A program made the translations under genes and the position numbers. A stretch of DNA of 64,000 nucleotides, from contig CM119374.1 in assembly GCA_051294905.1 (NCBI GenBank), positions 22,382,001 to 22,446,000 of the forward strand, read 5' to 3'. This DNA is from Botryllus schlosseri (lineage: Eukaryota). Positions 5,387 through 49,872 of this stretch are shown here, in pieces; positions within the stretch are counted from its first letter, which is position 1, and each line of letters opens with the position of its first letter. The notes below the pieces were generated by a model, which had not been told where the DNA came from, ran no database searches, and saw only the letters and a list, made by a program, of their open reading frames with translations.

Positions 5387-6638
5387 TCATACTTGCGAAT
5401 GCACATTGTCATCAGAAGTCATTTCGCCGACCGAATTGACTCGGGGCCCGTCAAAGTGCGACTCTTTCATCACGATGCCGTCACTGTACGGCTCAGGCGA
5501 GGGGACTTGGGAGTTAGCTGCGTTTTCCGAACACCCCACGTCAATAGCAATCACCCGGTGAGCTTCCTGCCTTTTACTGGAATCGTTTGAAACACCGCAG
5601 TGCAGTACGAAGGGTCTGAACCTCTCTCGAAACATTCGAAGTGCAGCTTTCCGAAATTCCTGCACCCGCAAATTGTAGATGACGAAATTCCATAAACTGT
5701 TACTTGTTAACATGATAACTGCCAAATATTCAGTGGTAGTGAACGCCGATGCGCTTTCTATACTTAAAGTCCGCGGCTGCTCCCAATTTGTAGCAGAATG
5801 CATAAACCGCACGACGGAAGTACAAATCACCGGCACCACCGATACCGAAAATGCCAGCACCATCATCGCTAGCGTGCTAGCTAGTCTCCTTTCCAAATCT
5901 CTACGTGAATCGGATGGATATGTAATAATTTTTCTTCGGGCGAGGGCGTGTTTCCGATACGCGTAATATGTCATCCCAGTAAGTATCCACATCACTACAA
6001 GCGGGATAAAGACAGTCCCAGCCGATACTATGTATGCAGGCTTTCCGTCGGCGAATATGTAATTAGAGCTCATGACTTTATACAAGAATCCAGGAGTGAA
6101 AACGGGGAGTAGACATATCACTGTGCACACGAACCATAGCAATCCGTTTAGTCTGACAGCGCGACGTTTGGCAACGTATGGGTTGTACGTGAGCGGTCTA
6201 TACACTGCCCAAAATCTATCTACGCCCGCGAACAAAAGTATGTATATTGACAATATAAGGACCAGCAGAGAGAAAAATCCCATTGTGACCACAAATTTGT
6301 TTTCGAAAATGTCTCCAAATTCACCACCGCCGTCGTGATAAATCAGATCTGCATTGTCGTAAGGGGTCATATTGGCAGTCTTTCCATACGGCTGCTTTAT
6401 TACTGCTCCCATGTGTCTAGGCTTGAAGAACGTGAGATATTGTAAAATTATCATGTTCGGCCACACCACGACTCCAATCACTAGATCGGCGAGAGCGAGG
6501 GAGATTTTGTAAATGCCTTGAGTGTCTCGCAGTTTAGCTGTAGTCCCGAATACGCACAGAATGATTATGTTACCGGAGATCGTTGTGATGCATGCTGCTA
6601 CCATGAACGCTATGCAAATTATGATGCTGTTTCGGCAC
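5387..6638 (-). CDS. Copy 2, exon 2: rhodopsin-family 7TM domain and C-terminal tail
   Basis: TM1 GN, TM2 SLALADL, TM3 VDRF, TM4 W, TM5 FIP, TM7 NSLWNFVIY, helix 8 EFRKA. Confidence 0.92.
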
Positions 6639-9600: not shown

Positions 9601-10867
9601 GCTCAAGCCGTGCAATAATTAAATTGTAACAGACAAATAAATGAAAGCTATTCACTCGCCTACAAGCGGGGTGAAACATTCGATCGACACCCCGTAGGTT
9701 CAGTTTTCGTGTTACACATTTTGGGTGTGAATGCACGCACACTCTTTGCGCTAAGGATTCGCTGTAGACGAACATCTCGTATTCTATAGCTTTCTACCAT
9801 ATCGCACCGGTGCAAAATATCTAAAGGGCGAGACACAGAATATGATCACGTTAAATATCTTTTGTGGTGGTAATACGCTCCTTTTTCACGATCACTATGG
9901 GTCGTGCATTGTCGTAGTAGGAAAAAAGTCATATTTGATAGCTGAACACAGCCTACGTGGTGCATCCATTTGATAATGTACTATATGCTTACCACGAGGG
10001 CATCCCGGTCCATGGCGACACTCCGCGATATTGCGCTGTGTAAAAATCATACCCGTGCCACTGTAAACCGCAAAATGGTGCGTACGGCTCGATAATCTCG
10101 TGGAACCGTCCCACTCCGCCATCGCTTCGGTCGAATAAGGCGGCTTGTACGCATGATTTCACCAAGTCCTGAAGTTCCATCGTGCTCGAGTCTAGCTTTT
10201 CAATCAAGTCCTTCCAACTCACCACACCCAGAAAGAAAGACTCGTTCACAAACTGATACTGCCTAGCAACTTGCGCAATATCGGCGTGGCAAGCCGTTTC
10301 AACTTTACTTCTGTTGCAAAACAGATCGTACATACGCCTGGTGTATTCGGTAAGAGGATAAGTCGGGCGTTTGCATTCATCATTAAATTCATTGCATCGC
10401 CATCTCTGCAAGCGTTCCAACATGACAACGAGATAGCGAGCTCCATTGATCCAAACCTTTGCGTAAGTCTGGTAAAGGCGTCGACAGCACATTTCTTTGT
10501 ATTCAATACTCGGCATTGGAAAGTCTGTGCAAACTTTCCCGTCGTTACCAGTCGTTGGTATTCGTGGATCCGTTGTGTGTTCTTTGGTTGACGAATTTGT
10601 CATGCTCTTTGAGTTCAAACTCTGATTGGCTGAGTGGACTTCAGTTGTGATTCTGACATGGTTACCTGCTAACGATAATATGGACCGATTTACGCCTTCC
10701 ATTGGTTTTGATGTTGACACATATCCAGTGTTAATATTCGATTTACAAACATTGATGCGTGAAAGTAAAATCAGCGTAAACGCTATGATCTGGTGAAACT
10801 TAGTCATCGACCTTCCGTCTTTTCTCGTGTCTTCTTCCACCACGCCCATGTGGCTTCGTCGGATCAT
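5387..10867 (-). CDS. Orphan class A GPCR with a large Cys-rich ectodomain, copy 2, intact two-exon model of 708 aa
   Basis: join(10867..9993, 6638..5387). Donor TG|GTAAGC at 9992 and acceptor aatctgttctag|G at 6639 join in phase 2 to give ...GMPSW-CRNSIIICIAFMVAAC... The CDS is 2127 nt (709 codons). Confidence 0.85.
7214..7238. repeat. (TAA)n microsatellite
   Basis: Directly visible: taataattaataataataataataa. Confidence 0.8.
7358..7779. mobile_element. Long-TIR (foldback/MITE-like) inverted repeat
   Basis: Near-perfect ~155-bp arms (~7358-7514 and ~7624-7779) around a ~110-bp spacer. No clear TSD. Confidence 0.8.
7800..8610 (-). mobile_element. Decayed Penelope-like retroelement (RT C-terminus plus GIY-YIG endonuclease), inside the copy 2 intron
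   Basis: Broken frames read GQYIAWNS..ANLIRTLVHRAL..FIGPSKCPVYLHLP* and YNYTCRRDSRYVGRTSVRLQQRINQHVP..AIGQHL..FHLKVLES..LCRQK, typical of Penelope-like element (PLE) RT-thumb and GIY-YIG regions. Stops and frameshifts are present. Confidence 0.85.
9993..10867 (-). CDS. Copy 2, exon 1: signal peptide, Ser/Thr stalk and Cys-rich ectodomain
   Basis: Hydrophobic segment IIAFTLILLS, several NxS/T sequons and 9 Cys after the stalk. The apparent stop TAA lies inside the GTAAGC donor. Confidence 0.88.
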
Positions 10868-32024: not shown

Positions 32025-32358
32025 CTACAAGCCCGAAGACTTGTATTCTCCGCCATTACCATGGAGGAGACTCTGCCCTGGATCAGTGTCGTTGGCGTTA
32101 ATATCTTCCCGTGGCAAATTGTCAAAATTCGCTGGCGGCTGATCTCGGATGTTCGCGTCTGGCTCGTCATCCGGACAGGTGGAATGCATTCGCTTGCGTC
32201 TCGTCCCGTTGGCGCTGGACTGAGACGAGCGTTGTCCGGACGGTGGAGATACGTGCGAAGTGGATTCGAGCTTTGAAATCACAGTGCCCCGATTCCTTCG
32301 AATTTGTCTGGGTTCTTCGCTCTGAAGGTTCACTAAGTTACGACGATGGCTTAAGTAA
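32025..32358 (-). CDS. AT1/APJ-like GPCR, probable terminal exon (Ser-rich tail)
   Basis: Strong acceptor cgtttttcgtatacag with a phase-2 start. Reads YLSHRRNLVNLQ...YKSSGL*. Confidence 0.6.
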
Positions 32359-35300
32359 CTGTATACGAAAAACGTGAAGTGGGTGTGAATACAGTCTTCA
32401 TTTAACACCGATTCAACCAGTTAAATAGCAGGTTCGTGGTACAGAACTTGAAGATTGCTTTCTTCGTAACATTGACAGCAATAGTGCATGTATTCAAACT
32501 GGAAGACTAGTGCTCGAAGATGTACTATTACGATAGATGTTGTGCAGAAATCAATATCAGCAGATTGTAGAACGAGCTAAATACATCCTTACTTATTTTG
32601 CTATATTCCTGGGGTAAGGTGGGTTATGTGCTTATGCGCACCACCCTGGCAATTAGAGGTGATCAGAAAGAAAGTATTTCTAATTAATCGGAGCACTCAA
32701 GTAGATTTTTCCTACTCGTACTACTTACTCAAGCGGTTATCTTTATACTTCCACTTCTATTTTACAGTTTTCCAAGCAGAACTACTTACTTTCAACAATC
32801 TACCTTTTCAATGTCGTAACGTAGATAGGCCTGATAGTTTTGAGAATAAGCATCAATGTTTTATTGCAATTGTCGTAGCAGCCGAGGGAAATGACCCCTG
32901 GATCACAGTAACTGAATGTATTTTCGAAAATTAAACTCAATGGAGGCGTTATTAATTATTTTGTTAGTCGCAAATATGCATATCTCATGATCATCATCAT
33001 TGGTTTAATAGCGATTTTTATCAGTTCAATTCACCACAAAAATGCGATACAATGAAAAGATAAGAAAGTGTCGAAGCGACTTGGAGTAGTCTATGGAATC
33101 AGACACCCACCTTGGCCTATGCGATGTAAAGAGGAGGCATGGACACTGAATATAAAGTAAAAGAAGATGGTATGGAAAAAGCAAGCGACAAAAAATGATG
33201 TGACATGTCATGGAAGGCGAGATCGATAGGTCAGGTCGTGGTCTGGTAATCTTGAGGATGGACTAGTAATTATTTAGTAGTAATTGCTTGTATTTCGACT
33301 TGAATGCGGACATGCTCGTCGACTGCCGGGTGGCCGGTGCGATACTGTACGACACGTTAGGTCCGGCATATTTGATAGAACGATGATCTTTTCGGCCGAT
33401 CATATGATATTTAGACGACGTGGAGGCGCGTGTGTTGTACTTCTGCGCTTTTGATTCCGAGGTTGCGAATGTAGCCATGAGACCCTGACCATTTTCCACG
33501 TCCAGTTAGCGACATTAACACTTTACTATTCGACTACTACTCCACAATGTACCTGTTGGGTCATGATATTTCTAACAAGTCTTTGACTATGGAATGGCAA
33601 CGACCGATTTCCCAGCTTCGTTCCGCTTCGCTGAGGCGGGATTCAGAATTGTTTTGCGGCAGCGACTGTAGGATTTCTGTCAATTCAAAAGATGTCTTCC
33701 GGAGCGCATAATTTACTGAATCTGGTTTGGATCGAAAGCTATTGTCGTAATGATTCCGAAAATATAAATTACAATATGATCAGGCTCTGAACTACCCGAA
33801 ATTCCCCTCCAAGTCTGAAATATCGGCATTGTCCAAACAATTGGAGAGCCGGAACGGGTCATTGTTATGGTCATTGTTTTCTGGTCACCGATTGTTCTGA
33901 ACAGTGCCGATTTCAGATGTTGAGGTTGATTTTTCGTCAAAGTCAGGCGTCTGACCCTATTTCAATTTATATGTATATATATATATATATATGGAATTAG
34001 GGCGACACTAGCTTTTGATCAAGACCAGATTCAGTAAATTCTGCGCTCTGGAAGATAACTTTTGGACTGCCAGAAATCCTACAGTCGCTGCCGCAAAACA
34101 ATTCTCCACTCCAGCCTCGGCGAAGCGGAACGAAGCTGCAAAATCGGTCGTTGCCATTCCATGTTTTCATTCGACACTTTGACCCGTCATATTTTCATCT
34201 TGCCATACCTATGCTTGAAAGTAATCTGTATTGAAAATATAATTACATTTCCCAATGATGTAAGAAGTAATAATACCTGAGGGTCATCGCTTCGCGAAAT
34301 TCTTGAGTTCGACCGGGGAATCATTCCAAAGATTTTCACGCAACAGTGGACTTTTGAACACAGTGCCTACAATCAAAACATCTGGTTCCGTTCACCTTTC
34401 GTAGGTCGCGTGACCTTGGATTTTTAACATACCTTAATTCTTGCTCTGTGCGTTGGACTCGCCGAATAAATAATCGGGTTAACCACGCTGTTGCAAAAAC
34501 TGAGTGCCGCGAATAGTAAATGCAGCATATACTGCATCTCCAGCAGTTTCCCTGTGGCCTTTGGAATCACGCTTGATGGTAAGGAAATAGTCCGTTAGGA
34601 TGGTCTGCTATGACGACGTGAAATCGAATCGGTACTATACTATAGGCCAGTGCTTCTTAACCTTGTCGCCAGGGCACGAGAAGCGTTTCAGATTTTGAAG
34701 GAGTGCAAACGCTCAGGGGGTGATGTGGGTGGCGCTGGGCTCCGTGGGCGGTATGGGGGCAGGGTTGTAATGACTCGAGTCATGACTCGACTCGAGTCCG
34801 ACTCGAGTCACGATTTTCTGATGACTCGACTTGACTCGAGTCATTTATTCAAAATACGGAAATGACTCGACTCGACTCGAGTCATTCTGTGTATTGACTC
34901 GACTTGGACTCGAGTCATTGCGCATGACTCGAACCAAGTCATTGACTCGAGACTCAGACGGCCAAGACCGACATTTCATTGTAATTCCGAAGCCAACACA
35001 CTATTGGGATTTCGTCTGTTGGTACCGGTACTTGAAAATGCGACCATAAACTGCTAAAAGTGAGGGAAATTGGTATATTCTAAATGCGAACCATTCGATA
35101 TCACCAAACAGAGTTATAAAAAGTGGGTTTACCAATACTTCTACTGGAAACTGAGCAGTCAACACAATGACTTGGACTCGATCTCGAGTCATAATTCCAT
35201 GACTCGGACTCGGCACTCTGCTCGCTGACTTGGACTCGGACTTGACTCGGTGGTGAATTGAAATGACTCGACTTGACTCGAGTCAAAACTATAAAAGTGA

Positions 35301-38300
35301 GATTGACTTGTGACTCGGAGCCTTGTGACTTGGTTACAACCCTGTATGGGGGTGCTAGAGAAAAATGCCGTCGCAGTAGGGGGTGCAGTAGGGTCATAGC
35401 AAAACAACAGTTCTATATATCCCTGAGTTCTCATTGTAAATATACATTCGGCAAAATCTGTCAAATCTCGAAATTTTTCTTCGCGCTAGGCGCGGAATTT
35501 ATGCCGGCCATGCTTGCAACATATTTCCATGCATGCAGTGTTTTATAACAATTCACGTAAAATGAATTGTGCGCGTACTTTTAGATCGCCATCACGCTAC
35601 CTCGAGTTATTTTCCACAACATGTTTCCAACTAGGTATTTTGTACGGCAGCGACCAGCGTGTCGAAATCGAAGAAAGAGACACTGTACCGCTTTTAAGAG
35701 TGACAGTGAGAGTGAGAGGCCTTTGTACATTGAAGATGCTTTGAATCTTTTTGGTTAAAATGATTAACTAAATATATTTGTATTTGAGAGCTAAAAAATT
35801 AAATCTTCAGAATATTTCTTCATCGTATTATAAAGGATGATATTGTTTAGTGTTGTGCCCCGCAACTTTAAATGAACGTTATATAATACGGACTGCTTTG
35901 TTTGGAATACATTCATGTAAAAGTAAATCGACCAGATGATATGAGGTCGTACCGGATGATTGTTATGACAACCTTGATTCGATCCGAATATAGCACATAC
36001 AATTATCACTGGTTAACAAAATGAAGAAAAAAAATTAGGCAGTACATCTGAGAGCCGTTTCTGGGGTTTTTGAGGTTGCTGATTACGAATATAAAATTAG
36101 TTTTGTCAAAATGGCTCTTTGTCAGCTCAAAGCTCAAAATTACTGTATTTACCCTTAAATATTTCTCTTGGTAGGAAGAAAATCGTAGTTTTTTCTGATT
36201 TTATACTGCGCATAAATAGTAGAAGCGGAGTTTTTCGAGTTTTTCGTTGATAATTCTCGGATAATCCCTGATCCGGGGATTATCAACGAAAAACTCATAT
36301 AACTCCGCTTCTACTGGTCGGAATTGACTCAAATTTGTTTTGCATCGTCTTTGAAGACAGCTCAACAATTTCATGAGGTTGACAAAAAAATTTGAGAATT
36401 TTTATTTTTTTATTTTTAATAATAATTTAAAAATTTCAATTCAAGATTGCACGGCCTTTACTGGTTGGAATCGAGTCAAATTTGGTGTGCATCGTTTTCT
36501 TGGACAACCTGACGATTTAGTCACTAGACGAGTGAGATTTGGAAAAAAAAGTTTTTTTTGAACAACCCTAATGTGCAGTGTGCACACTATTCCATCGCTG
36601 GCCTGCACAATCGCATCTTCATTGGCTTGGTGCTCACGATATTATCGTTGACCTACACAATCGCATCTGCAATAGGCCTACGAACGATATAATCGCTGGC
36701 CTAACCATCTCGGACCCAGCATGCGTTGGCTCCTATCTCTCGATGGCTTGTTGACGATATGCCGTTATGTGTATTCTAATTAGTGATTCTGAGAGTGACA
36801 CCGCGAAACTGAATGACATCGAATGTTCGCAAAAATGTGCGTGCGTGCAAGCGTAATTGATTTCCGCTGATAATTAATTCGAAAAAAATCGAAACCCCCT
36901 GATTTTATTTCAATCCCCCTACATTTTCGGCTGGCTGCGTGCCTGATCACGAGAATTAGAGCGAGGTATCATGTCGGCATCAATTCCAGTATCAGCTAGT
37001 CGTCCTTCTAGTACTCCAAACCTAAACATAAGGATGGTCAAAAGGATGTGAAGCCGTTGAAGTTCCCGACATACGACCTGCCAACCTTTTGACTCTCTAC
37101 GAAGCGCTGCTACTATTCAGCCCACTTCTGTGGAAGCTGAAAAAGCATTCAATGAACGTGGACTCTTTGTTACATAATTCCGGTCCCAGCTACAGGATGC
37201 CACAATTGATGCATCTGTGCTTTATAAAGAGGGCATTGCAGAAGCAGTGAACATTAAATGTGCGTGGTTTTTCTCGTATTCGCTCATTCTGCGCGTGTAG
37301 GTAGGTACTCTACAATAACACTGTGTAATGATTTTGCGATCCGTTTTACATGCAGACCTAATGAAATCGATTGTCTCACTTAGCAGTTATTATCCGGTTA
37401 ACCGGTAAGATAAATTCCAAAATATCCGGATATATCCGTTATCCGGATAGTGAAAATTATTGATATCCGAACTAACCCTAGTTCTGCTGTTGTATTTTGA
37501 TTAAAAGAGTCTTATGTGTGTAAAAATAAGAAGTAGATTGAATTTCTAAACTTTATAGTACCCCTGAGCCGATAGTCATTACCGCGAAAATGGGATATTT
37601 TGGTCAAAATAGCCTCATGGGTTATCTCCACAACAGGAGCCAATTTGAAAAAAAACTATGGCCATATTCAGAATCAGTGCCCTTCAGAACCCCCGAACCA
37701 CTCTTACTTTGTCTCCCTAAAAATATCTGTTGACCAGTGTTATCATAGCGTTAATTAGTTGAGTGGTCCGCGGGCGCGATTCAAGCTATTTCCAATAGTG
37801 AAATCCCAAGCCGAAAAGACCGACCGGACTTCGAAATCTTACCCCCTTTCTTCCACTACCGTCTCTAAATTAGTGGGGCGTCAGACCTAGGCAATTATTG
37901 AACGGGGCGCAGCGAGAAAAAGATTAAGAACCACTGCATACAGGCGATCAATCTGCGGGCTCAAAATGAACCTTGCCCGTTTTATCAAGATTACAGTGGA
38001 TATTCAGACACAGGTCTTAAGCAGAGAGCAGAAGCTTTAGGAACAGTCGGAAAATCCCTGGCAAATTTATGTTACGAACGGGTAATGTCAGGCTTGATTA
38101 AATATAGTCGTTATTACGCATACATAGCTCTATCAATGATATTCGGTCGATTTAAATAAAATGCTTACGTGGTACCCGCGAATATAGGTCAGCATGTACG
38201 GCTATTGCAACTGACTTGATGCTCTATCATTGATTATAATATATAGGCATCGGCACCCATGCAATGCTATGCCGATGACATGACAATGAAAACAGTCTAT

Positions 38301-41300
38301 ATAACCCTGTCAGTAGCCCTGGGTGTTTTGTGCCACGGTGTGAGCTTTATGTAGAACAGATTAGTATCAGTTTACGTAGGACCGCAACAGCCGCACCACA
38401 AACCCCCAATGGGAGGGGTCCAAGCTGCGAAGGGGGCCCAAAACTTCACAAATAAACTTAAAGTAGAATATGTTCGTGTGTTTATGTCACGGATGTTGTA
38501 CATGGTATGTACAGAGGTATTGACGAAATGATACACGTAGAAGGCAGGGTGGTTTAGGGCGACAAAGCGCCCAGACATTTCGTTTAATACCCTATGGGGG
38601 CCCCAGATCAGCGTTTTGGAGGGGGCTAAAAAAGTACTTTTCCTGTGCTGAGTATATACGATATTGCTCTTTAGAACACTTATCTGCAAATGAAAGGTTT
38701 GTACTCACTCAAAATGGACAAGATTCGAGATAAAATTCGACGTTTGATTCGGTAACCAGCACACAGTGAAGGCGAGAATAATTGTTGTCACAGTTTTCGT
38801 AATGCGGCGGACCTAAACATAAATATAAGGATGAACAGCGGCCCTGATTGAAGATGTGTTCAATATAACACTTAATAGGATGCATCAATGAATAGCACAG
38901 TGCATTCTATTAATCCACGCAGTTCAATGTGTTCGGCTATAGCATGGATTCTCTAGTTTTTGTTGGCCGTGGCCCATTGAGGCCGAACTCTTGTCCTAAA
39001 GTATACAACAGGGGTTCTCAACCCGCGGCCTGCAGACGCTTATTCTGCGGCCCGTGAGATCTTTCAATATGATCGCAATTACTACCGGCACAGTATTGTT
39101 ACATATTAATTTAGCTACTTAAGCTCTCTTATCACACCGTCTCTGTTCCGTTTCATTGATTCTCATTCTTCAATGTGTTCTGGTTTCTTGATACATGATC
39201 GAGTTTAGATTCTTATTGTTTTGAATAGGTCTTCGGACAGTTCCATCTGGAGCTATACATATCACCTGATCTTAGAAAAAAGCGTTACTAGCTAGGTCTC
39301 AGGCCTAGCAATCCATATTTTGAGGCATTGTTGAGCATCAGCCATGGAAGGAAAGATTAAGGGTTGATTCGTTTGCTCAGAAATTACCCCGAACATGAGA
39401 CTTCTTCTCATATCACTGAGAGCTCAAAGTGACAATGGCCTCTGTAACGAAAAAGTTACCGCAATTTTGTACTTGCTCTCTCACGCATTGAAACAGAGAG
39501 TTCAGTTCTCTGGTGCAAGGGTTTGAAGGTGCACATTATGGCTCTTCAAAAATTACTTTTTTTCTCAAATCGTACTGGCTACTTGATAAAATTGTTAGGT
39601 TACCTAATTTAAGCCTACACACAAAATTTGGTTCAATTCCAGCCAGTAACCGCTTTGCTACAGAAGAAGAAAATTTCCATTTATTATATAAAAATAAATA
39701 ATAAAAAATTTGAAAATTTTCTGTTCACCCCATGAAAGTGTTAGGCTGTCTATAGAAACGATCCTCACCAAATTTGGTTCAATTCCAACCAGTGGAAGCG
39801 GAGTCATTGCCGTCGAAAAATTTGGATTTGAATAAAATAGTATATACGGTGAGCACAATTATAATAAATAAACAAAGAATCGGTCACCGTAAATACTATT
39901 TTATTCAAATCCAAATTTTTCGACGGCAATAACTCCGCTTCCACTGGCTGGAATTGAACCAAATTTGGTGAGCAGCGTTTCTATAGACAGCCTAACACTT
40001 TCATGGGGTGAACAGAAAATTTTCAAATTTGTTATTATTTATTTTTATATGATAAATAGAAACTTTCTTCTCCTGTAGCAAAGCGGTTACTGGCTGGAAT
40101 TGAACCAAATTTTGTGTGTAGGCTTAAATTAGGTAACCTACCAATTTTATCAAGAAGACAAAAAAGTCATTTTTGAAGAGCCCTAGTGCACATACCGACT
40201 TCAGAACGAATGCAATGCACGCTTCATGAAAGGATTTTGCTTGTTCCGTCGGAAGATAACATAATCTCACTAGAAACAGCAACTGGAAGCTTACGAACGC
40301 TGTCCATTGATGCTGTAGAATGCATACAAATGTACCAAATGCCTATTGCCCATGTACGACTGGTAAATAGGCTATATTAGCCTAAATATAATAGTAGTCC
40401 ACAAATATACCGTAATAATGTTTTGCGGCCCGCAGCGGTTTTTTGCTGTTAAGATGCGGCCCGTTATGCAAGGAAAGTGGAGAACCTCTGGTATACAATA
40501 TACACTGTAAAGTAAATAGAATAAGTTGAATAGATGAGTTGCCTGTTTTCATCGTGACGCGAGTGCAGATCGTATCAGCGGCATTTTCTGTTACGTAATA
40601 CGACCTTTAAACCGATACCTGGGTTAAGTAGGTTTTACATGCAGTGATAATCGCATCTTAGTGTTTTATTTCAGTATAGACGCTAACTTTTCTCGTACTC
40701 GAGGACCCACAATTACTACTCTGACCTCCTCTAATATTTTATAAATTGCGCTTACGTGGATCGATACATGCCTGTGGTTATATAAAACTGGACTCCCGGT
40801 TACCTGACCATCTCTAGCTTCGCTGCTTGTCGAGGAAGCCCTGACAAGTCTACCGCCTTCTTTACTTTTTTCACGCCCTCGCACATACGATACGAGTACG
40901 AGGTAGCATCGGCAGATTATTATCAGCGGGATTACGAAGCCGATCACGTTGCGCTCCACCATATGAACTACCCACCACACATCAGTTTGATTTTCCGGGT
41001 ATTTCCAACTGAGAATACAATTCCCCGCATTACACAGGCTAAAGAACATGATAATATATTTGAAAATCGTCAAAAATATCTTCACTTTCTTAGATTTATC
41101 ATGGTAAATATACAGTTTGAGAAGTTCCACTTGACGAGGCTACATGAATGTTGAGCCGATAGACCAGATTTCAATACTTCTTGGATCAGCAATGCGTGCA
41201 ATATATAATACTAATTTTTAATGATCTGAAATTATCATGCAATCGTGTAACGACCAGAGATGGTCAGTATCGAAGTACTTCTACTTTTTGAAGTACTCGA

Positions 41301-44300
41301 AGTAGATTTTTCCCACTCACACTACTTTTCAAGTGGTTATGATTTTAGACTTCTTCTACTTCTACTAAACAGTATTCAGTTTTGTAGGCAAAATAAGCCT
41401 AGAATACCTACTCACTTACTGACTTGGGAACCACTTCTCCTACTTCTACTCGAGTAGAAATTCCGGAGTTACTTGTACTTCTACTTGAGAAGCGGCGGTG
41501 ACTACTTTGACCACCTCTGGTAACGACTCATACATGAAGATGATCCTGGACATGACACTGAAAATAGCCTTCTGCATACCTGCAATATGTCTTATTCCTG
41601 GAAACGTGTTCCCCCCGAAACACGGCCGATGGCACTGCGAGTAAAATGCTAAAACCCCATACGATTGCACACAAACACCAGCATCTTGCCGCTGTTCGTA
41701 AACTTTTGGTCTGCACTTGTATACCTGGGAAAATAGGAATAAATAAATGGACTAAATCTTCGAGGAGGGTTGGTTCGATTATGTTCACAATAAGAGCAAT
41801 TCTGTTCACAATAAGAGCAGTCTCATGTTCACAATAAGAGCAGTCACGTTCACAATAGGAGCAGTCTCATGTTCACAATAAGAGCAGTCTCATGTTCACA
41901 ATAAGAGCAGTCTCATGTTCACAATAAGAGCAGTCATGTTCACAATAGGAGCAGTCTCATGTTCACAATAAGAGCAGTCGTTGTATTCACAATAACATCA
42001 GTCGCAGCACCACCATATCCCCCGGACACGATGTCCGAGTGGCAACATAGTCCGAACACAACCCAGACATGATGTCCGAACACCCCCAGACACGATGTCC
42101 GAACGCCCCCCCCCCCCCAGACACACCCCAGACATAATGTCCGAACGCCCCCCACCTCCAGACACGATGTCCGAGTGTCAACGCAGTCCGAACACACTCC
42201 TGACATGATGTCCGAACACCTCCAGACACGATGTCCGAGTGTCAACGCAGTTCGAACACACTCCTGACATGATGTCCGAACACCCCCAGACACGATGTCC
42301 GAGTGTCAACGCAGTCCGAACACACTCCTGACATGATGTCCGAACACCCCCAGACACGATGTCCGAGTGTCAACGCAGTCCGAACACACCCCAGACATGA
42401 TGCCCGAACACCCCCAGACACGATGTCCGAGTGTCAACGCAGTCCGAACACACTCCTGACATGATGTCCGAACATCCCCAGACACGATGTCCGAGTGTCA
42501 ACGCAGTCGCAGTTCGCGAAACGATGGTGTCACCCGTGAGAGCGACCAATCATTCAATGATCGCGTGCGTTTTACTGAGCCTCCATTGTTCTCTCACAAA
42601 TAAATCGACCGCAAACGAAGTGATCGAAGCTTGCAGCTTACGCTGTAGTAAACTAGTATTGCGAAGTAATTTAGTAGCAAAATGTCTATTTCTGTTCTCT
42701 ATTCTTACCTTAACCAAACCTCTTATCTTATTGAAATTGAATTCGAAAATCGAGTGCCTTGACTTGACTCGAGTCACCTTCGAAAATAGATTGACTTGAC
42801 TTAACTCGATGAGTCTAAATGTGCAATAACTCGAAATGACTCGTGACTCGAAGGTAGTGACTTGATCCCAACACTACGTTGCACTACGAAAATTTTGAAT
42901 TATTTCTACCATGATGCGTGATGTAACCTCCGGAATTCCTCATCCTGCCAGATTTCGTTAAAATATAGTTCTTTCATGTAAAAATTTGTCAGTTTTTGGT
43001 CATCATGTCTGGGTGTGTTCGGAGTTTCGGACAGCGTTGACTCTCGGACATCGTGTCTTATTCGGACACACCATGGCTGGTATGTATTGTGAATATTATT
43101 GTGAACATGACTGTTCTTATTGTGAACATGAGACTGTTCTTATTGTGAACATGAGACTGTTCTTATTGTGAACCTGAGACTGCTCCTATTGTGAACATGA
43201 CTGCTCTTATTGTGAACACGAGACTGTTCTTATTGTGAACATGACTGCTCTTATTGTGAACACGAGACTGTTCTTATTGTGAACATGACTGCTCTTATTG
43301 TGAACATGAGACTGTTCTTATTGTGAACAGAGAGAGAGAGAGAGAGATATGATATTCTTTCTCGCCTGCACCATCGAGATGCTTTGGCGACGGAGTTGCG
43401 ATACGGCCCCATGAGGTCATCTAGTCTGCGCCCCCGTTTTTTTTTCTCCTCCATGCTATCCGTGATTGCTGAGCGCCTAGCAGGATAGCTGCGGATACCA
43501 TTTTTCGAGTCTTTGGTATGACCCGGCCGGGGATCGAACCCACGACCTACCGCTCGAGAAGCCGGACGCATAACCATTACACTATCTCGCTCTTATTGTG
43601 AACCTGAGACTGCTCCTATTGTGAACATGACTGCTCTTATTGTGAACACGAGACTGTTCTTATTGTGAACATGACTGCTCTTATTGTGAACATGAGACTG
43701 TTCTTATTGTGAACATGACTGCTCTTATTGTGAACACGAGACTGTTCTTATTGTGAACATGACTGCTCTTATTGTGAACATGAGACTGTTCTTATTGTGA
43801 ACATGACTGCTCTTATTGTGAACATGAGACTGCTCTTATTGTGAACATGGCTGTTCTTATTGTATTATCATGTCTGGGGTATCTTCGGACTGCATTGACA
43901 CTCTGAACATCATGTCTGGGGGTGTTTGGATATCATGTCTGAGGTGTGTCCGCACTGCGTTGCCAATCGGAAATCGTGTTCGGACATCATGCCCCGGCCT
44001 GTGTTCAAATATCAAGTCTAGGGTGTGTTCATAAAATCATGTTTGGGGTGTCTCCGGACTGCGTTGACACTCGGACATCATGTCTGGGGCGTGGCGAGTT
44101 CGGACGTCGTGTCTGGAGGATGTCTGGGGGGTATTCGGACATCATGTCTGGGGTGTGTCTGGGGAAGGGGCGTTCGGACATCGTGTCTGGGGTGTGTTCG
44201 GGCTGCGTGTACACTCGGACATCGTGTCTGGGGGGGTTCGGACATCGTGTCTGGGGTGTGTTCGGACTGCGTTGACAGTCGGACATCATGTCTGGGGCGT

Positions 44301-47300
44301 GGTGACTTCGGACATCGTGAATGGAGGATGTCTGGGGGGTGTTCGGACATTATGTCTGGGGTGTGTCTGGGGGGGGCGTTCGGACATCGTGTCTGGGGTG
44401 TGTTCGGACTGCGTTGACACTCGGACATCATGTCCGGGGCGTGGTGAGTTCGGACATCGTGTATGGAGGATGTCTGGGGGGTGTTCGGACTTATGTCTGG
44501 GGGGGGGGCGTTCGGACATCGTGTCTGGGGTGTGTTCGGACTGCGTTGACACTCGGACATCTTGTCTGGGGCGTGGTGAGTTCGGACATCGTGTATGGAG
44601 GATGTCTGGGGGGTGTTCGGACATTATGTCGGGGGTGTGTCTGGGGGGGGGGGCGTTCGGACATCGTGTATGGGGGTGTTCGGACATCATGTCTGGGTTG
44701 TGTTCGGACTATGTTGCCACTCGGACATCGTGTCCGGGGGATATGGTGGTGCTGCGACTGATGTTATTGTGAATACAACGACTGCTCTTATTGTGAACAT
44801 GAGACTGCTCTTATTGTGAACATGACTGCTCTTATTGTGAACATGAGACTGCTCTTATTGTGAACAGAATTGCTCTTGTTGTGAACATAATCGAACCAAC
44901 CCTGTAGAAATCTTCCGTGACTATACAGAAAGGGCTGCTTTGAAATGTACATCTTTCTCGTCTGTTGTGAGATCAAAACGCCAATCCCGCGGCCGACACG
45001 GCTTCTAGGAAGTCATAGAGTTCTAGAGTTCTAATTGTCAAGTGAGCAGCGAGAATAAATGAAGAGTGAAGAGTAGTCCATTAAAGTGGTCCATGAAACC
45101 ATACCCATAAAAGACATTGAACTCTATCAAAATGCATTATCCTAGGCCACTAATCCTAATCAGGCAATATGCGACACTGTCGTTGTATAGTGTAATTATT
45201 ACAATAGTAAATACGTCATTGAAAGTGAAATAATAATTTGTATATACCTTTCACTACAACGTTGTATCTGTCGATTGCCATAACCGTAATTAAGAAGACG
45301 CTGGCGTACATGTTGACATTCGTGAGCATTGACGCCGCTTTGCATCTGAAAAGCGACGTAGCATGAATGATTGAATGAGAAACGAATCTGTCGCGGAAAA
45401 ACGATTACCATTCATCATTCTATATATTTAAATATATGAGTAAAGTAGAAAAGTGTCCTTGGCATAACGAGTTGATTGAGATGCAACATCAGTTAGTAAG
45501 CGTGGGATTTGGGAAAGTCACTTTACCGGAACGTCATTATATCCACTGATGTCGATATATTTGAATGCGATGTTTTTCTGTGGAGATTTCAGCCGGCCAA
45601 ATGAGCTGCGTGTAGAGACAAGCATTATATAACATTTTTGAGCCACTTTTTATCAAGTCGGCCCGTTTTTACGATAAAACCAGACCGAGATCCTCATATA
45701 CCATTCATCCAACATACCCAAGTGATTTTTTTCGGATTGCGAGACAGAACGAAGGGAACAACTAACATTTTTTCGCCTAGGATTTACTTACACGATATTC
45801 CCAAATATCCAATGCCCTTGAATATGAGTCACAGCCCATACTGGCAAGGTCGCTATCAAGGATAGATCTGCAATTGCAAGGTTTCCGACGAATATGTCCA
45901 CCTGGGTTAAAAGAGGCGATTAGGACTGACTGCTCAATTTACTATATTGTCATCGTTCATCACGGTAAATGTCTGCAGATCAGTCCAACAATTCATATAA
46001 TAGTGTCTATTGAGTTGTTACTACAAAATAGATAGACCTAGCCACGTCAAAAATAATCGAAGTAGGAGTAGAAAATAAAGGTTAAAAATTAATCAACTAA
46101 ATAGTTTGAAAACATTAATTGAGGCGAGTCGTCGCAGACATTCTGTTAGTCGAAAAACAGGTCAGTGTTCAAAATAGCAAGATAGATCTTCATGGCAAAC
46201 TCAGAATAACTTATAGTACTACAAATACAATTTGCTAATTTTTATATAGTCTGTTACGGTCAATTGGAGGCCATATCAATCAGTTTTTCAGATAATTTCG
46301 GTTATACAGTTTCTCAAAACTATTCTAAACTGTTTCTACTAGATAGTGTCTATTATGTTAAAGCTAAGTGGTCTCAAATCAATAACTGGTCCATTTGTTA
46401 AACATGTCAATCGCACTGTAATAAATTCCTAGGACCAAAATTTGCATTCCACACAGGAGACAGATTGACGAAAGCTTGACGCCAGGCATAATCTTCAATG
46501 CTTGGTTAAACCGCACGCCAAATATCAATATTTATACTTACAATTATAGACAGCTTCTGGACGTATAATCCCGATAATGAGCGACAAGTCGCTTTATGGA
46601 TACTTGTTACCGAAGTGGGAATATGGCAAAATATCATTTACATATGTCAATTAGATTTGCGGATAGTGCCATATATAATTGTCACTGCGGTGAAAAGCCG
46701 CTGCAAAACACACACCCGAATTAATCTGAATGACCCGTTGTCGATATATCCCTCGGCCATTAAAAAGGCATGAGAGATTATTCCATGTCCTATGATTAGC
46801 TCCTATTAGTGGCCTTGAGCGCATTGTACACACGAATTGTGGATTCTATCAGGCGTACATATTAGTGGCGTTTGCCGAGATCAATATTTCAAATGTAACG
46901 ATATTCCAACACATTGGCATAGCCAGGAGGCTAAATGGACCATGCCCCTGCCCCCCCCCCCCCCCCCCTTGCATCTGCTGCACAATATAAAAGGGAATGA
47001 TGAAATTGCCCATTGAATGGTTGCCGTATCTCGAAGATTTTCCTGGGGGAGTTCCATTAAACTCATACATATTTGCGAATATGCGACGCCTCGACCAAGG
47101 CTAGTTTTTGAGACTACTTGCTTAAACACGTTGCTAACATTTCAACTTGAAGTATTTCCATTATCTCGGAATTTTCTCTTTTAATTTGCGGAAGGGCAGG
47201 AATTCACGACATTACGTATAATTCAATGGCAATGCTGATCACGTCGATCACATCTGGCTATACTCTACACAAAATAAGAACAGGAAAGTTGAGAAGACAG

Positions 47301-49872
47301 GTTCTAGACATATAATTGGACAGTGTCTTACTGCCGTTGCAAACCGTAAGTTCTACGAAATGCAAATTAATCAGCTAGTTCTCCACAGGACATATCGTCT
47401 CACACATATTTCTTATATACTATATACTATATTTCATTCTTTGATAGGGATTGCTATCGCGCTGAAAAATGTCAATCGAACGATTCTCTACTCACTGCGA
47501 CCGTTTTCGGACTTTTAGACAGAGTAGACACGTAGAACACCACGGAGTTCGCCACTATTCCGACAGCAAACAGTATGAAGTACCATATAGGGATGATGAC
47601 TCCATTCACAAATCCGTATGCTGCGACAAACTGACTGGAAAGTCACGAAATAAAGGAGATGAGACGGTGTGATGTAAACTGGACGTCATGAGTGTTAATA
47701 ATGGCGTAAAGTCAATGGGGGATATAAAGGGAGTTTGCAAATATATCATGAAACAATTTTGGCTGAAGGTACCTTGATGCAGAAATTTGGTCTATTTGGT
47801 CACTGGTCAACCAATCGCACGTCTAAAATATTTATGAAAATGGATTTTCAATGGACATGTGTGTCACGTTCAATTAAATGAATCGCATATACACCGAAAC
47901 GAAAATAAACTCTTGAGGGACACACGATTTGAAACATTGAATAATTGACACGTGATTGAAGAGATATGGGGTTGCAACCTGTTCATGTCAAATCCACGAT
48001 CTGTACTCTGCCTAGTTGAAAATAGTTCACAAATTGCGAGGGAAAGCTTGGAGTGACATCATTCAAAATTTTATATTCTTAAAGAAGCAGTCAAAATCTG
48101 TGAAGATATATGGGCATCTAGTATTTTCAGACATAATCGATGTAACACTGTGGAGTATAGACGAATTTGAAACCGTCAGTCACGCAACCGGATAGTAGTC
48201 ATAAGCCCTCATCTATCTAAATCGCGACAATTTCTCATTATCGGTCAAGCGGACTTTATCAAAGCTGCAATGGCCATGTTATGACATTAGTCAGCGGAGA
48301 ATGTCATATCTAATACCCAATCTCATTGCTGAATACATTACATGCACGCCTAAACTTTAACATGCGAAAATGCCGCGCTCGCTCTAGAACAGCGGTTCTC
48401 AACCGGGGGTCCGCGGACCCCTAGGGGTCCGCGAAGCAATTTCAGGGGGTCCGCGAGACCTTTAAATTTTCAAAAAGGTTGATAACCTAATTTTTATTAT
48501 ATTTTTTAATTTGAGAAAGCAAGAGGCAGTTTCGCACTACAGCTGATAAAACCTCATGACTCATATCATCATAATAATCGTCTGGCATGGACTATCGTAG
48601 TGTGGAAATTCATTTTCATTGCCAGTTTTCCAATAACCTGCTGATACAAACATATTGCTGTTTATAGACGTTTTATTGGGGTTTGTGGAAAAAATTAAGA
48701 TATGGGAATAGTAACATCAATCAGGGTGACTTCGTAATGTCTGCGAAACCTTCCCGATTTGAAGTTGACAGTCTCATCAAATTAGTGAACGAACAGTCGT
48801 TTGAAATAAAAATTTCCGAAGTATTTCCATAATTTGTCCCAATGCAGGGAACAGCTTCTTGGGGGTACAGAACTTTATTATACAATTGAATAGTTTATTC
48901 ATATTGAAATGAACCCGAATATTTTCGGCTGACACTCGTCATAAATCGGACAATGATATACCTGCTCTTAAAGCTCGGCTATCAGATTTTGCGCATTCTT
49001 ATTGCGGATGCCCTATCGACAAGGCTGATTTTTTGATGAACAAGGAGTGTTTCGTTGCTATCAAGGCATTACGCTCCAACCCTGAAATTCATATCACCAG
49101 TTATATTGATATGCAGCCTTGTCTTGTTAATGTTCCATTGTTCATGGTCGAAAATGTTTGCTCGTAAATATATATGTAAACCAGAACAGAACAAGTCGTT
49201 TCATGACAGTCTTTCTCAAGTTGGAAAACTTGGATGCGTTCTTTGGAGCATAAAATTTGTCTATTCTTTTAGATTAGGATTTCACTTTGACGGTAGAAAC
49301 CTCTGCGGGCCGATCAAAATTCCGTCGCGGGCCGAATCCAGCCAGCGGTTCGTATGTTGCCCGTCCCTGCGGTAGATGCTGGATGTGATATGTTCATAAA
49401 ATATGTGTTTCTTCATTTTGGTGCCATAAATGTTGCGATCACACCAAAAGTATCGTCGAAAGCGTTATGTGTTAATATTGCATTAGCCTCCACCTATCTT
49501 TGCTGAAATGGTTTTCTGCACTCCTCGTTCGGATTTTCAAGACACGACCCCGTACTTCAATAAATACAGTAGGAAAATTAGCTTTGAAATAATAAAAGTC
49601 CACCAATTTCTACATAAATAGTATGATATTATCTTCAATAAAAATCATTATTTTGCTGTTTATCACAAGCCTACAGTTCATATTTGCACAAGACAGATGA
49701 AGGTTGCACCATATTAGAGCTAAAATTGAAATAAAACTTGAGGGGGTCCGCGAAGCCAAAAAGGTTGAGAACCACTGCTCTAGAACAAAAAACTCAGCCA
49801 ATGTAATCTATACCTATCGGTGTGATGCACAGAACGGTTCGGTGGTGAAGTTGTAAAGGCCAAAGATTCCAT
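32025..49872 (-). CDS. Multi-exon class A peptide GPCR, angiotensin II / apelin / chemokine receptor-like (~479 aa model)
   Basis: Exons 49872-49814 (tentative), 47634-47496, 45901-45792, 45345-45248, 41724-41580, 41008-40804, 38812-38709, 34571-34433, 34366-34277, 34225-34209, 32358-32025. All junctions are GT-AG and phase-compatible, totalling 1440 nt. Motifs: GIVANSVV, NLAIADL, TLPVW, WIFG..CK, NMYASVFLITVMAIDRY, GFVIP, CWLP, NSVVNPIIY. Confidence 0.85.
33591..34160. repeat. Inverted pair of a ~160-bp dispersed repeat
   Basis: 33591-33750 is the diverged reverse complement of 34009-34160. A third copy lies at ~26690-26872. A (TA)n tract sits in the spacer at ~33970-33991. Confidence 0.75.
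34209..34225 (-). CDS. AT1/APJ-like GPCR, predicted 17-nt micro-exon
   Basis: Acceptor ttatattttcaatacag, exon ATTACTTTCAAGCATAG, donor GTATGG. It bridges the phase-0 end at 34277 to the phase-2 start at 32358. Confidence 0.55.
34277..34366 (-). CDS. AT1/APJ-like GPCR exon: helix 8 and Cys cluster
   Basis: tgttttgattgtag|ALCSKVHCCVKIFGMIPRSNSRISRSDDPQ|gtatta. The upstream intron is 66 nt. Confidence 0.75.
34433..34571 (-). CDS. AT1/APJ-like GPCR exon: TM7
   Basis: Reads MQYMLHLLFAALSFCNSVVNPIIYSASPTHRARIK|gtatgt. The 5' boundary is inferred at an AAG acceptor. Confidence 0.85.
34760..35344. mobile_element. hAT-type MITE (relative of the gactcgagtc family), inserted in another MITE end
   Basis: TIRs cagggttgtaa / ttacaaccctg and a perfect TSD tatggggg. 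Confidence 0.9.
36007..37739. mobile_element. CAC...GTG-terminus DNA transposon derivative (Chapaev/CMC- or Transib-like) with nested material
   Basis: Termini cactggttaaca / tgttgaccagtg with a 4-bp flanking duplication ttat. The superfamily assignment is inferred from the termini only. Confidence 0.55.
37060..37480 (+). mobile_element. Decayed hAT transposase C-terminus plus right end
   Basis: Reads TIQPTSVEAEKAFNERGLFVT*FRSQLQDATID (hAT dimerisation motif). It is followed by tatccgg subterminal repeats and the terminus aactaacccta at 37480. Confidence 0.7.
38709..38812 (-). CDS. AT1/APJ-like GPCR exon: TM6
   Basis: atgtttag|VRRITKTVTTIILAFTVCWLPNQTSNFISNLVHF|gtgagt. Confidence 0.9.
39009..40490. 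mobile_element. Buster/Charlie-like MITE carrying a nested palindrome
   Basis: TIRs caggggttctc / gagaacctctg and a perfect TSD gtatacaa. Confidence 0.88.
39540..40183. mobile_element. Long palindromic (foldback/MITE) element with ~300-bp arms
   Basis: ggctcttcaaaaat...gaataaaatagtat is mirrored after a ~50-bp spacer. Related sequence occurs at ~36400-36570. Confidence 0.88.
40804..41008 (-). CDS. AT1/APJ-like GPCR exon: ECL2, TM5 and ICL3
   Basis: gtattctcag|T-WKYPENQTDVWWVVHMVERNVIGFVIPLIIICRCY...RDGQ|gtaacc. An alternative in-frame donor lies at 40755. Confidence 0.88.
41255..41519. mobile_element. hAT-type MITE (265 bp)
   Basis: TIRs cagagatggtca / tgaccacctctg and a perfect TSD gtaacgac. 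Confidence 0.9.
41580..41724 (-). CDS. AT1/APJ-like GPCR exon: TM4 and ECL2 Cys
   Basis: cctattttcccag|IQVQTKSLRTAARCWCLCAIVWGFSILLAVPSAVFR...KTYC|gtatgc. Confidence 0.9.
41762..44907. mobile_element. Foldback-like element with modular tandem-repeat arms (~3.1 kb)
   Basis: Ends agggttggttcgattatgttcacaa / ttgtgaacataatcgaaccaaccct. The outer arrays use a 21/23-mer (ttcacaataagagcagtctcatg) and the inner arrays a GC-rich ~20/60-mer, both inverted between the arms. An 8-bp direct repeat aaatcttc lies at 41754-41761 and 44908-44915. Confidence 0.85.
43329..43590 (-). mobile_element. tRNA-derived SINE inserted in the foldback arm
   Basis: On the minus strand: A box TAGTGTAATGG, B box GGTTCGATCCC and a (TC)n tail. 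Flanked by the 13-bp duplication tcttattgtgaac. Confidence 0.88.
45248..45345 (-). CDS. AT1/APJ-like GPCR exon: TM3 with DRY
   Basis: cgcttttcag|A-CKAASMLTNVNMYASVFLITVMAIDRYNVVVK-G|gtatat. Confidence 0.93.
45792..45901 (-). CDS. AT1/APJ-like GPCR exon: TM2 and ECL1
   Basis: ctcttttaacccag|VDIFVGNLAIADLSLIATLPVWAVTHIQGHWIFGNI|gtaagt. Confidence 0.93.
47496..47634 (-). CDS. AT1/APJ-like GPCR exon: TM1
   Basis: gtgactttccag|T-QFVAAYGFVNGVIIPIWYFILFAVGIVANSVVFYVSTLSKSPKTVA|gtgagt. Confidence 0.9.
47773..47822 (-). CDS. Possible additional N-terminal exon of the AT1/APJ-like GPCR
   Basis: aaatattttag|TCDWLTSDQIDQISAS|gtacct ends in phase 2, compatible with 47634. It starts in phase 0 and I could not identify its upstream partner. 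Confidence 0.4.
48390..49777. mobile_element. Buster/Charlie-like MITE with internal cargo
   Basis: TIRs cagcggttctcaacc / ggttgagaaccactg and a perfect TSD ctctagaa. Confidence 0.9.
48930..49098 (+). mobile_element. Penelope-like RT N-terminal fragment inside the MITE
   Basis: Reads KARLSDFAHSYCGCPIDKADFLMNKECFVAIKALRSNPEIHIT. This resembles the segment just before the (K/R)xDKG motif of PLE reverse transcriptases (recognised from family knowledge). Confidence 0.6.
49814..49872 (-). CDS. Candidate first coding exon of the AT1/APJ-like GPCR
   Basis: An in-frame TGA lies upstream, then MESLAFTTSPPNRSVHHTD (NRS sequon) and AG|GTATAG in phase 2, compatible with 47634. Confidence 0.45.

Follow-up and report, generated by a model that had tools for sequence, protein, structure and literature searches.

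A predicted one-helix-per-exon class A receptor gene of Botryllus schlosseri and its probable tunicate family

The window analysed here is a 64,000-nt stretch of the Botryllus schlosseri genome (C4:22382001-22446000, about 41% G+C, from an assembly of 495.5 Mb); coordinates below are window positions unless a contig is named. On its minus strand, seven collinear exons lie between 47634 and 34433 which, spliced at canonical AG/GT borders, read in one frame as a stop-free core of 313 amino acids (aa) with the seven transmembrane helices (TM1 to TM7) of a G protein-coupled receptor (GPCR). Each core exon carries one membrane helix, and the introns fall in the first intracellular loop (ICL1), the first extracellular loop (ECL1), ICL2, ECL2, ICL3, ECL3 and just past TM7. 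The gene spans about 18 kb, with introns of 0.4 to 4 kb that consist in part of foldback and minisatellite repeats. The core exons are as follows, a slash marking the splice point.

47634-47496, minus strand: TM1 exon, 139 nt; phase 2 in, 0 out; borders CCAG/ and /GTGAGT; …GVIIPIWYFILFAVGIVANSVVFYVSTLSKSPKTVA
45901-45792, minus strand: TM2 and ECL1 exon, 110 nt; VDIFVGNLAIADLSLIATLPVWAVTHIQGHWIFGNI; D2.50 and the TLP (TxP) motif; donor GT/GTAAGT, phase 2
45345-45248, minus strand: TM3 exon, 98 nt; CKAASMLTNVNMYASVFLITVMAIDRYNVVVK; C3.25 and DRY
41724-41580, minus strand: exon for ICL2, TM4 and the first part of ECL2, 145 nt; phase 1 in, 2 out; ends at the conserved Cys (…NKTYC)
41008-40804, minus strand: exon for the remaining ECL2, TM5 and ICL3, 205 nt; acceptor TTCTCAG/; SWKYPENQTDVWW…ARDGQ
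38812-38709, minus strand: TM6 exon, 104 nt; VRRITKTVTTIILAFTVCWLPNQTSNFISNLVHF; CWxP
34571-34433, minus strand: ECL3 and TM7 exon, 139 nt; DVIPKATGKLLEMQYMLHLLFAALSFCNSVVNPIIYSASPTHRARIK; NPxxY; ECL3 without Cys; donor AAG/GTATGT, phase 0

The splice dinucleotides flanking these exons (AG or GT) are intact at 14 of 14 positions, and the intron phases (in-out) run 2-0, 0-2, 2-1, 1-2, 2-0, 0-2 and 2-0 from the TM1 to the TM7 exon. When the exons were scanned one by one, six of the seven matched successive positions of the Pfam 7tm_1 profile (PF00001): TM2 positions 17-56 (E=2e-8), TM3 54-91 (E=1.8e-8), TM4 91-140, TM5 135-189, TM6 199-228 and TM7 232-260. Two exons passed the gathering score alone, and the remaining matching exons fell just under it. 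The seventh, the TM1 exon, has no listed Pfam match and resembles TM1 of the solved receptors CX3CR1, AT2 (an angiotensin receptor) and SSTR3. The spliced core has the complete set of class A hallmarks: N1.50 (GIVANS), D2.50 (LAIADL), C3.25 with the ECL2 Cys (CK with TYC), DRY, W4.50 (IVWGF), P5.50 (FVIPL), CWLP and NPIIY. Because the Pfam matches are collinear, the junctions are in phase and every motif is in place, we conclude that the exon chain is real, far beyond chance. The gene is a member of the rhodopsin class (PF00001), by the order of its helices and by its motifs.

One border of the core required a choice. A second in-frame acceptor, at 41038, would lengthen the TM5 exon to 235 nt and add 10 residues. 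It was dropped in favour of 41008, because the 205-nt length and the TYC/SWKYP junction both equal those of the Styela clava gene described below, which reads NKTYCSWKYP; a Logan fragment reads SSWKYP.

Within the introns, the repeats are most extensive between TM3 and TM4, where the 3.5-kb intron is nearly filled by a foldback element with minisatellite arms (41762-44907). Long mirrored open frames, rich in HRVW/SDIMSG repeats, run there on both strands, and G+C reaches 47%. A second inverted-repeat element occupies about 39520-40110 in the TM5-TM6 intron and contains near-identical open reading frames (ORFs) on opposite strands: 39628-39735 (plus) against 40001-40108 (minus), and 39774-39932 (plus) against 39804-39962 (minus).

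With the TM5 exon as query, HMMER run against the full library returned a 517-aa Styela clava protein, XP_039249869 (P0002/P0006), which carries PF00001. This protein is known from automatic annotation only, without an assigned ligand or function, and its names vary in NCBI and UniRef ("somatostatin receptor type 5-like", "type-2 angiotensin II receptor-like" and, currently, "type-1 angiotensin II receptor B-like" isoform X1). All seven window exons align to it, in order, at 43-68% identity (TM1 43%, residues 68-104; TM2 68%; TM7 49%, residues 328-374), and the spliced core does so at 49% identity across 317 columns. Mapped exactly to its locus (L001), the Styela protein is encoded by 10 coding exons of 143, 172, 113, 98, 145, 205, 104, 142, 78 and 351 nt. 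The TM3, TM4, TM5 and TM6 exons have equal lengths in the two genes (98, 145, 205 and 104 nt), and those for TM2 and TM7 are 3 nt off. An earlier sequence-only reading of this stretch had suggested an intron-position comparison; every intron position and phase of the core proved identical to the Styela locus. The two genes have the seven one-helix exons in common, together with the strings NKTYCSWKYP, CWLPNQ and FCNSV(V/I)NP. They differ at their ends: the N-terminus and the C-terminal tail have no detectable similarity, and the 78-nt exon that follows TM7 in Styela was not found in the window. By alignment and exon structure, the window gene is the orthologue of the annotated Styela XP_039249869.

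The outer exons of the gene are less secure than the core, and three candidates follow.

49872-49814, minus strand: candidate first coding exon (tentative), 59 nt; ATG 49872-49870; MESLAFTTSPPNRSVHHTD plus 2 nt; NRS glycosylation site
48588-48553, minus strand: rival start exon; ATG, MPDDYYDDMSHE, phase 0, then a GT donor; pairs with an alternative acceptor at 47630
32321-32025, minus strand: candidate last coding exon (tentative); 98-aa Ser/Arg/Pro-rich tail; stop TAG 32027-32025

The candidate first exon begins at the first ATG past an in-frame stop and ends in a phase-2 donor, AG/GTATAG. It fits as the start exon because a phase-2 donor is what the TM1 acceptor needs; phase 2 before TM1 is common to the window gene, the Styela orthologue and a paralogue on the same contig (described below). 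The rival start is disfavoured by its phase 0, as against phase 2 at the TM1 acceptor in all three related genes. Its segment MPDDYYDDMSHE is acidic and tyrosine-rich and, were the acceptor at 47630 used, could take the place of the candidate first exon; acidic, tyrosine-rich stretches in the N-termini of chemokine-type receptors are sulfated. A start from 47986 onward (MNRLQPH...) was set aside for its weak donors.

At the other end, CAG/AGC at 32321 is the sole phase-0 acceptor in a 131-codon open frame ending at 32025. Joined to the core, the candidate start and last exons give a plausible nine-exon model with a predicted protein of 431 aa. The total may instead be 10, if an equivalent of the 78-nt Styela exon 9 exists; a small exon between 34432 and 32322 is possible. 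Such an equivalent was not found when phase-0 AG...GT segments of 34432-32000 were scored against the Styela peptide, and neither tblastx against the paralogue and Styela nor ranking by splice strength gave anything convincing. The peptide ALFRTIGDQK at about 33900 was rejected as an exon for want of an acceptor in a usable phase. A 35-nt exon at 33145-33111 (CPCLLFTSHRP), which would lead to a better acceptor, TACAG/, near 32358, is a speculative alternative.

The sequence-only reading had described this locus as a complete, in-phase seven-helix receptor, hidden in 11 to 12 small exons, possibly of a non-vertebrate chordate. The in-phase assembly stands for the seven core exons and their 313 aa, the outer exons being candidates; the exon count does not, as the evidence secures seven exons and makes one start exon and one last exon plausible. 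The outer coordinates of that reading, 49872 and 32025, are those at which the candidate start exon begins and the candidate last exon ends, and are likewise tentative. The gene looked hidden because exons of 100-200 nt escape the ORF list, in which only fragments appear, but its Styela orthologue is annotated and tunicate relatives are published (PMC2396169, PMC3310001, PMC10792014). An intron-rich seven-helix gene of a non-vertebrate chordate was the right description, in that all close homologues of the window gene are tunicate proteins, from Styela, Ciona, Phallusia, Clavelina and Oikopleura.

We compared these homologues in a maximum-likelihood tree. A search from Ciona savignyi P0005 supplied a further set of tunicate receptors, here group B (Ciona intestinalis P0009-P0011, Phallusia P0012/P0015, Clavelina P0013 and Styela P0014), whose NCBI names are NPBWR1-like, SSTR5-like or AT1-like. 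The window gene and Styela P0002 paired with a support of 100/100; Oikopleura joined them at 93/81, and group B completed a tunicate clade at 94/93. Outside this clade were the vertebrate rows, CMKLR1/C5aR/C3aR/FPR with a support of 100/100 and CCR5-like/CXCR6 with 99/98, and the window gene was not monophyletic with the canonical chemokine receptors, vertebrate CCR/CXCR. Of the vertebrate families in the tree (CMKLR1, C5aR, C3aR, FPR, CCR and CXCR6), the first four came from the Ciona savignyi search, in which they were selected by shared 5-residue words and not by closeness. The tree places the clade relative to these six families, and not relative to AT, apelin, RXFP3, SSTR or opioid receptors.

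Group B, the sister group within the tunicate clade, is also intron-rich, with 9-12 coding exons (12 in Ciona, 9 in Styela), and has CWLPNQ in common with the window gene. Two of its introns, one ahead of TM6 and one behind TM7, agree with the window gene in phase and approximately in alignment column; the rest are shifted by several residues or have another phase, and identity in the helices is about 30-45%. Neither the one-helix-per-exon layout nor its exact conservation between two ascidians is surprising, since introns commonly interrupt the ascidian GPCR genes of this family. The annotated Ciona P0011 (locus L018; Styela, L019) is without most of TM3 in the alignment, and exons of 41 nt and 55 nt replace the NxYASVF...DRY region; this gene model appears to be mistaken in part.

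About 130 kb from the window gene, the same contig carries a multi-exon paralogue of it on the opposite strand (G000:C4:22285620-22294940, plus strand; loci L013/L015). Its intron phases are those of the window gene at the first four junctions, while TM5 and TM6 form one open stretch, the intervening intron apparently having been lost. It has NRY in place of DRY, keeps CWLPNQ, and is nearer to Styela P0002 than to the group B receptors.

To place the family among vertebrate receptors, the core of the Styela orthologue was scored with HMMER against all solved structures in the PDB. The scores were 146 bits for RXFP3, 139 for AT2, 133 for AT1, 130 for the apelin receptor, 128 for CCR4, 126 for the nociceptin and kappa-opioid receptors and 123 for SSTR3/5. 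The top 21 rows were RXFP3, AT2, AT1, apelin and CCR4, with the opioid and SSTR receptors about 20 bits under the top score. A structure search of the ESM Atlas ranked AT2, apelin, AT1 and bradykinin receptors first and SSTR and galanin receptors lower; RXFP3 was not among the ten rows listed.

The individual window exons spread their best PDB matches over several families. The TM1 exon matched CX3CR1 best, along with SSTR3, AT2 and AT1; TM2 matched CCR6 (32.7 bits; AT2 27.6 bits), TM3 RXFP3 (27.3 bits; AT1 24.9 bits), TM4 C5aR1 (28.3 bits), TM5 CX3CR1 (with SSTR5 and RXFP3) and TM6 the B2 bradykinin receptor (25.3 bits; RXFP3 24.2 bits), and the TM7 exon was uninformative. AT2, present in 5/7 of the per-exon lists, was the most recurrent receptor, but no single family was best in every exon, and neither AT1 nor AT2 was the best match of any of the seven. 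Angiotensin receptors were accordingly not the closest family in every part, and for the whole Styela orthologue AT2 came second to RXFP3. For each of TM3, TM5 and TM6, RXFP3 was among the four best matches, and RXFP4 occurred in the lists of TM2 and TM5.

The nearest characterised relatives of the window gene thus fall in the wide chemokine cluster (RXFP3/4, AT, apelin, bradykinin, chemokine and C5a/chemerin receptors). The TM2 exon reads ATLPVWAV, and a TxP motif in TM2 typifies receptors of this wide cluster. The motifs by which the sequence-only reading had likened TM1-TM3 to AT1 are all in the core (IPIWYFILFAVGIVANSVV, KTVA, LAIADL, TLPVWAV, WIFG, CK, NMYASVF and IDRY), including the TM2 TxP motif (TLPVWAV) to which it had drawn attention. 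Its assignment to an angiotensin/apelin/chemokine-type group identified the broad neighbourhood correctly, yet AT1 is not specially close: RXFP3 outscored it by 146 to 133 bits, and the best exon matches are other receptors.

Further comparisons bear on individual families. AT1 and chemokine receptors have a disulfide between the N-terminus and ECL3. ECL3 is without Cys in the window gene (HFDVIPKATGKLLEMQ) and in Styela (HFRVIPRPSTMRGNQ), so that this second disulfide is impossible here. Vertebrate RXFP3/RXFP4 coding regions are intronless, and those of angiotensin and apelin receptors are intronless or nearly so. An intronless ORF for a 483-aa gamma-group receptor is also present on another contig (G000:C6:6839721-6841169, minus strand; locus L017:1718-3169) and shows 29% identity to the window gene. 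Among solved structures it matches AT2 (147 bits) and SSTR1 (139 bits) best, RXFP3 is not among its top 60, and its TM6 reads CWVPLQ. Because this unrelated receptor scores AT2 at 147 bits, top matches of AT type are generic for tunicate gamma-group receptors.

Published surveys describe tunicate receptors of a similar kind. In Ciona, Kamesh et al. (2008, PMC2396169) listed 2 receptors as 'chemokine cluster' and another 12 as 'unclassified chemokine receptor cluster-like' and found no classical chemokine receptors, and published work found no chemokine receptors outside vertebrates (PMC2396169, PMC10792014). Yegorov & Good (2012, PMC3310001) reported two very divergent rxfp3-type genes from Ciona and none from amphioxus or sea urchin. 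Aleotti et al. (2024, PMC10792014) placed a few urochordate orphans as sister to a vertebrate chemokine/chemokine-like/angiotensin/apelin/bradykinin clade, with relaxin-3-type receptors of urochordates and vertebrates next to that clade and the angiotensin/apelin group inside a vertebrate-specific clade, and left to later studies what the urochordate orphans do. The receptors of Aleotti and Kamesh resemble the window gene as tunicate class A receptors with BLAST matches to the chemokine/angiotensin cluster that lie outside every vertebrate family. The likeness is one of kind, neither the window gene nor a Ciona orthologue of its subgroup being matched to a named sequence there, and the window's species was apparently outside both data sets. 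The Ciona receptors that Shiraishi et al. (2019, PMC6475428) deorphanised are said to have no kinship with known peptide receptors, and the main text of that paper mentions no relation to angiotensin, somatostatin, chemokine or relaxin receptors.

Several explanations of the gene's identity compete. The receptor could be RXFP3-related and sense a tunicate relaxin/insulin-like peptide. Human RXFP3/RXFP4 (PDB 9kfi, 7yj4) are like it in that RXFP3 is the top solved match of the Styela orthologue and ranks first for the TM3 exon, second for TM6 and fourth for TM5, and in that RXFP3 and the tunicate receptor have CWLPNQ (TM6) and TLP(F/V)WA (TM2) in common, neither of which occurs in the C6 intronless receptor. 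Ciona relaxin-like peptides exist, as do the two rxfp3-type Ciona genes (PMC3310001) and urochordate relaxin-type receptors (PMC10792014). The lead of RXFP3 over AT2 is just 7 bits, however, and RXFP3 is missing from the ten Atlas rows that include AT2, apelin, AT1 and bradykinin receptors; over the window exons together AT2 is matched more consistently, and the DRY of the window gene is TRY in RXFP3. We regard an RXFP3-related receptor as possible but doubtful. True orthology to an angiotensin- or apelin-type receptor has in its favour the TM1-TM3 motifs, the TM2 TxP motif and the common gamma-group neighbourhood, the second to fourth ranks of AT2, AT1 and apelin for the orthologue and their lead by structure, the presence of AT2 in most per-exon lists, and the current NCBI name of the Styela protein. 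It is very unlikely nonetheless: AT1/AT2 are best for no exon, the ECL3 Cys is lacking in both the window gene and Styela, the unrelated C6 receptor scores AT2 higher than the orthologue does, NCBI names in the family shift among SSTR5-like, NPBWR1-like and AT1-like, and the published tree confines angiotensin/apelin receptors to a vertebrate-specific clade (PMC10792014).

A further candidate is an ancient, well-characterised bilaterian neuropeptide-receptor family, namely the somatostatin/allatostatin-C-, opioid- or NPBW-type receptors (SOG cluster). The earlier NCBI name of the Styela protein, 'somatostatin receptor type 5-like', and the high places of SSTR5 and SSTR2 for the TM5 exon point that way, and the gap of about 20 bits to the top match is small enough to leave a distant relation possible. 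SOG receptors were not the closest family, though: for the orthologue as a whole, RXFP3, AT, apelin and CCR4 all outscore the SSTR and opioid receptors, which are lower in the structure ranking too, and the TM7 string FCNSVVNPIIY differs from YANSCANPILY, the TM7 signature of somatostatin receptors. Membership of the SOG cluster is therefore improbable. The locus might, finally, be an unexpressed or decaying copy, one of two local paralogues from which constraint was lately released. The paralogue about 130 kb away on the same contig, the terminal exons that are not conserved, the lack of a polyadenylation hexamer in the 1.2 kb past the stop, and a gene model read from genomic sequence alone would all suit decay. 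Against it, the seven exons contain neither stop nor frameshift, the splice dinucleotides are intact at 14/14, and every functional motif is kept. Cross-species identity to Styela (43-68%) is concentrated in the helices, the pattern expected under purifying selection, which also speaks against decay, and we hold this to be the least credible of the explanations considered.

We consider it probable that the window holds one intact minus-strand tunicate gene for a class A gamma-group GPCR of peptide type, with Styela XP_039249869 as its orthologue, and that it belongs to a tunicate-only family standing beside, not inside, the vertebrate RXFP3/4-angiotensin-apelin-bradykinin-chemokine cluster and 1:1 orthologous to none of its members. 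Some observations weigh against this interpretation. Both candidate terminal exons are without similarity to Styela or the paralogue by tblastx and were placed by splice-site and phase logic; AATAAA and ATTAAA are absent within 1.2 kb past the stop; and the gene model, including the predicted first and last exons, derives from genomic sequence. Placement relative to angiotensin, apelin, RXFP3 and SSTR receptors draws on HMMER ranking, structure ranking and published trees unlinked to this exact gene, while G-protein coupling and a peptide ligand are what we infer from relatives.

If the gene acts as its relatives do, a peptide ligand would bind in a pocket formed by the helices and ECL2, the latter held by the disulfide between C3.25 and the ECL2 Cys. 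CWxP, DRY and NPxxY would then relay activation to a heterotrimeric G protein, for which Gi/o is the likeliest class by analogy with RXFP3/4, AT2, chemokine and somatostatin receptors. The Ser/Thr-rich tail of the candidate last exon may recruit kinases and arrestin, leading to desensitisation.

A more specific proposal, which we hold to be rather unlikely, is that the window gene and its Styela orthologue are the unduplicated tunicate counterpart of vertebrate RXFP3/RXFP4, keeping an ancestral intron-rich one-helix-per-exon structure that vertebrates would have lost, and paired with tunicate relaxin/insulin-like peptides. Relaxin-3-type GPCR signalling would, if this were true, predate the vertebrate genome duplications, and its origin could be tested in a sea squirt. 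Tunicates are the closest living relatives of vertebrates, and the origin of the angiotensin/apelin/bradykinin/relaxin-3/chemokine/chemoattractant receptor cluster is still debated. What the window adds is a second stolidobranch member of an orphan lineage, with an exactly conserved exon structure, in a lineage that is intron-rich and gives each helix its own exon; it also offers a concrete receptor for deorphanisation. The overall picture is unchanged, the family being already annotated in Styela, Ciona, Phallusia, Clavelina and Oikopleura, and the significance of the gene would grow only if a tree and a ligand screen tied the lineage to relaxin-3-type signalling.

Another GPCR gene lies elsewhere in the window, at 5387-10867, where tblastn with Styela P0002 gave no match. 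The window thus contains two unrelated peptide-type receptor genes within 40 kb.

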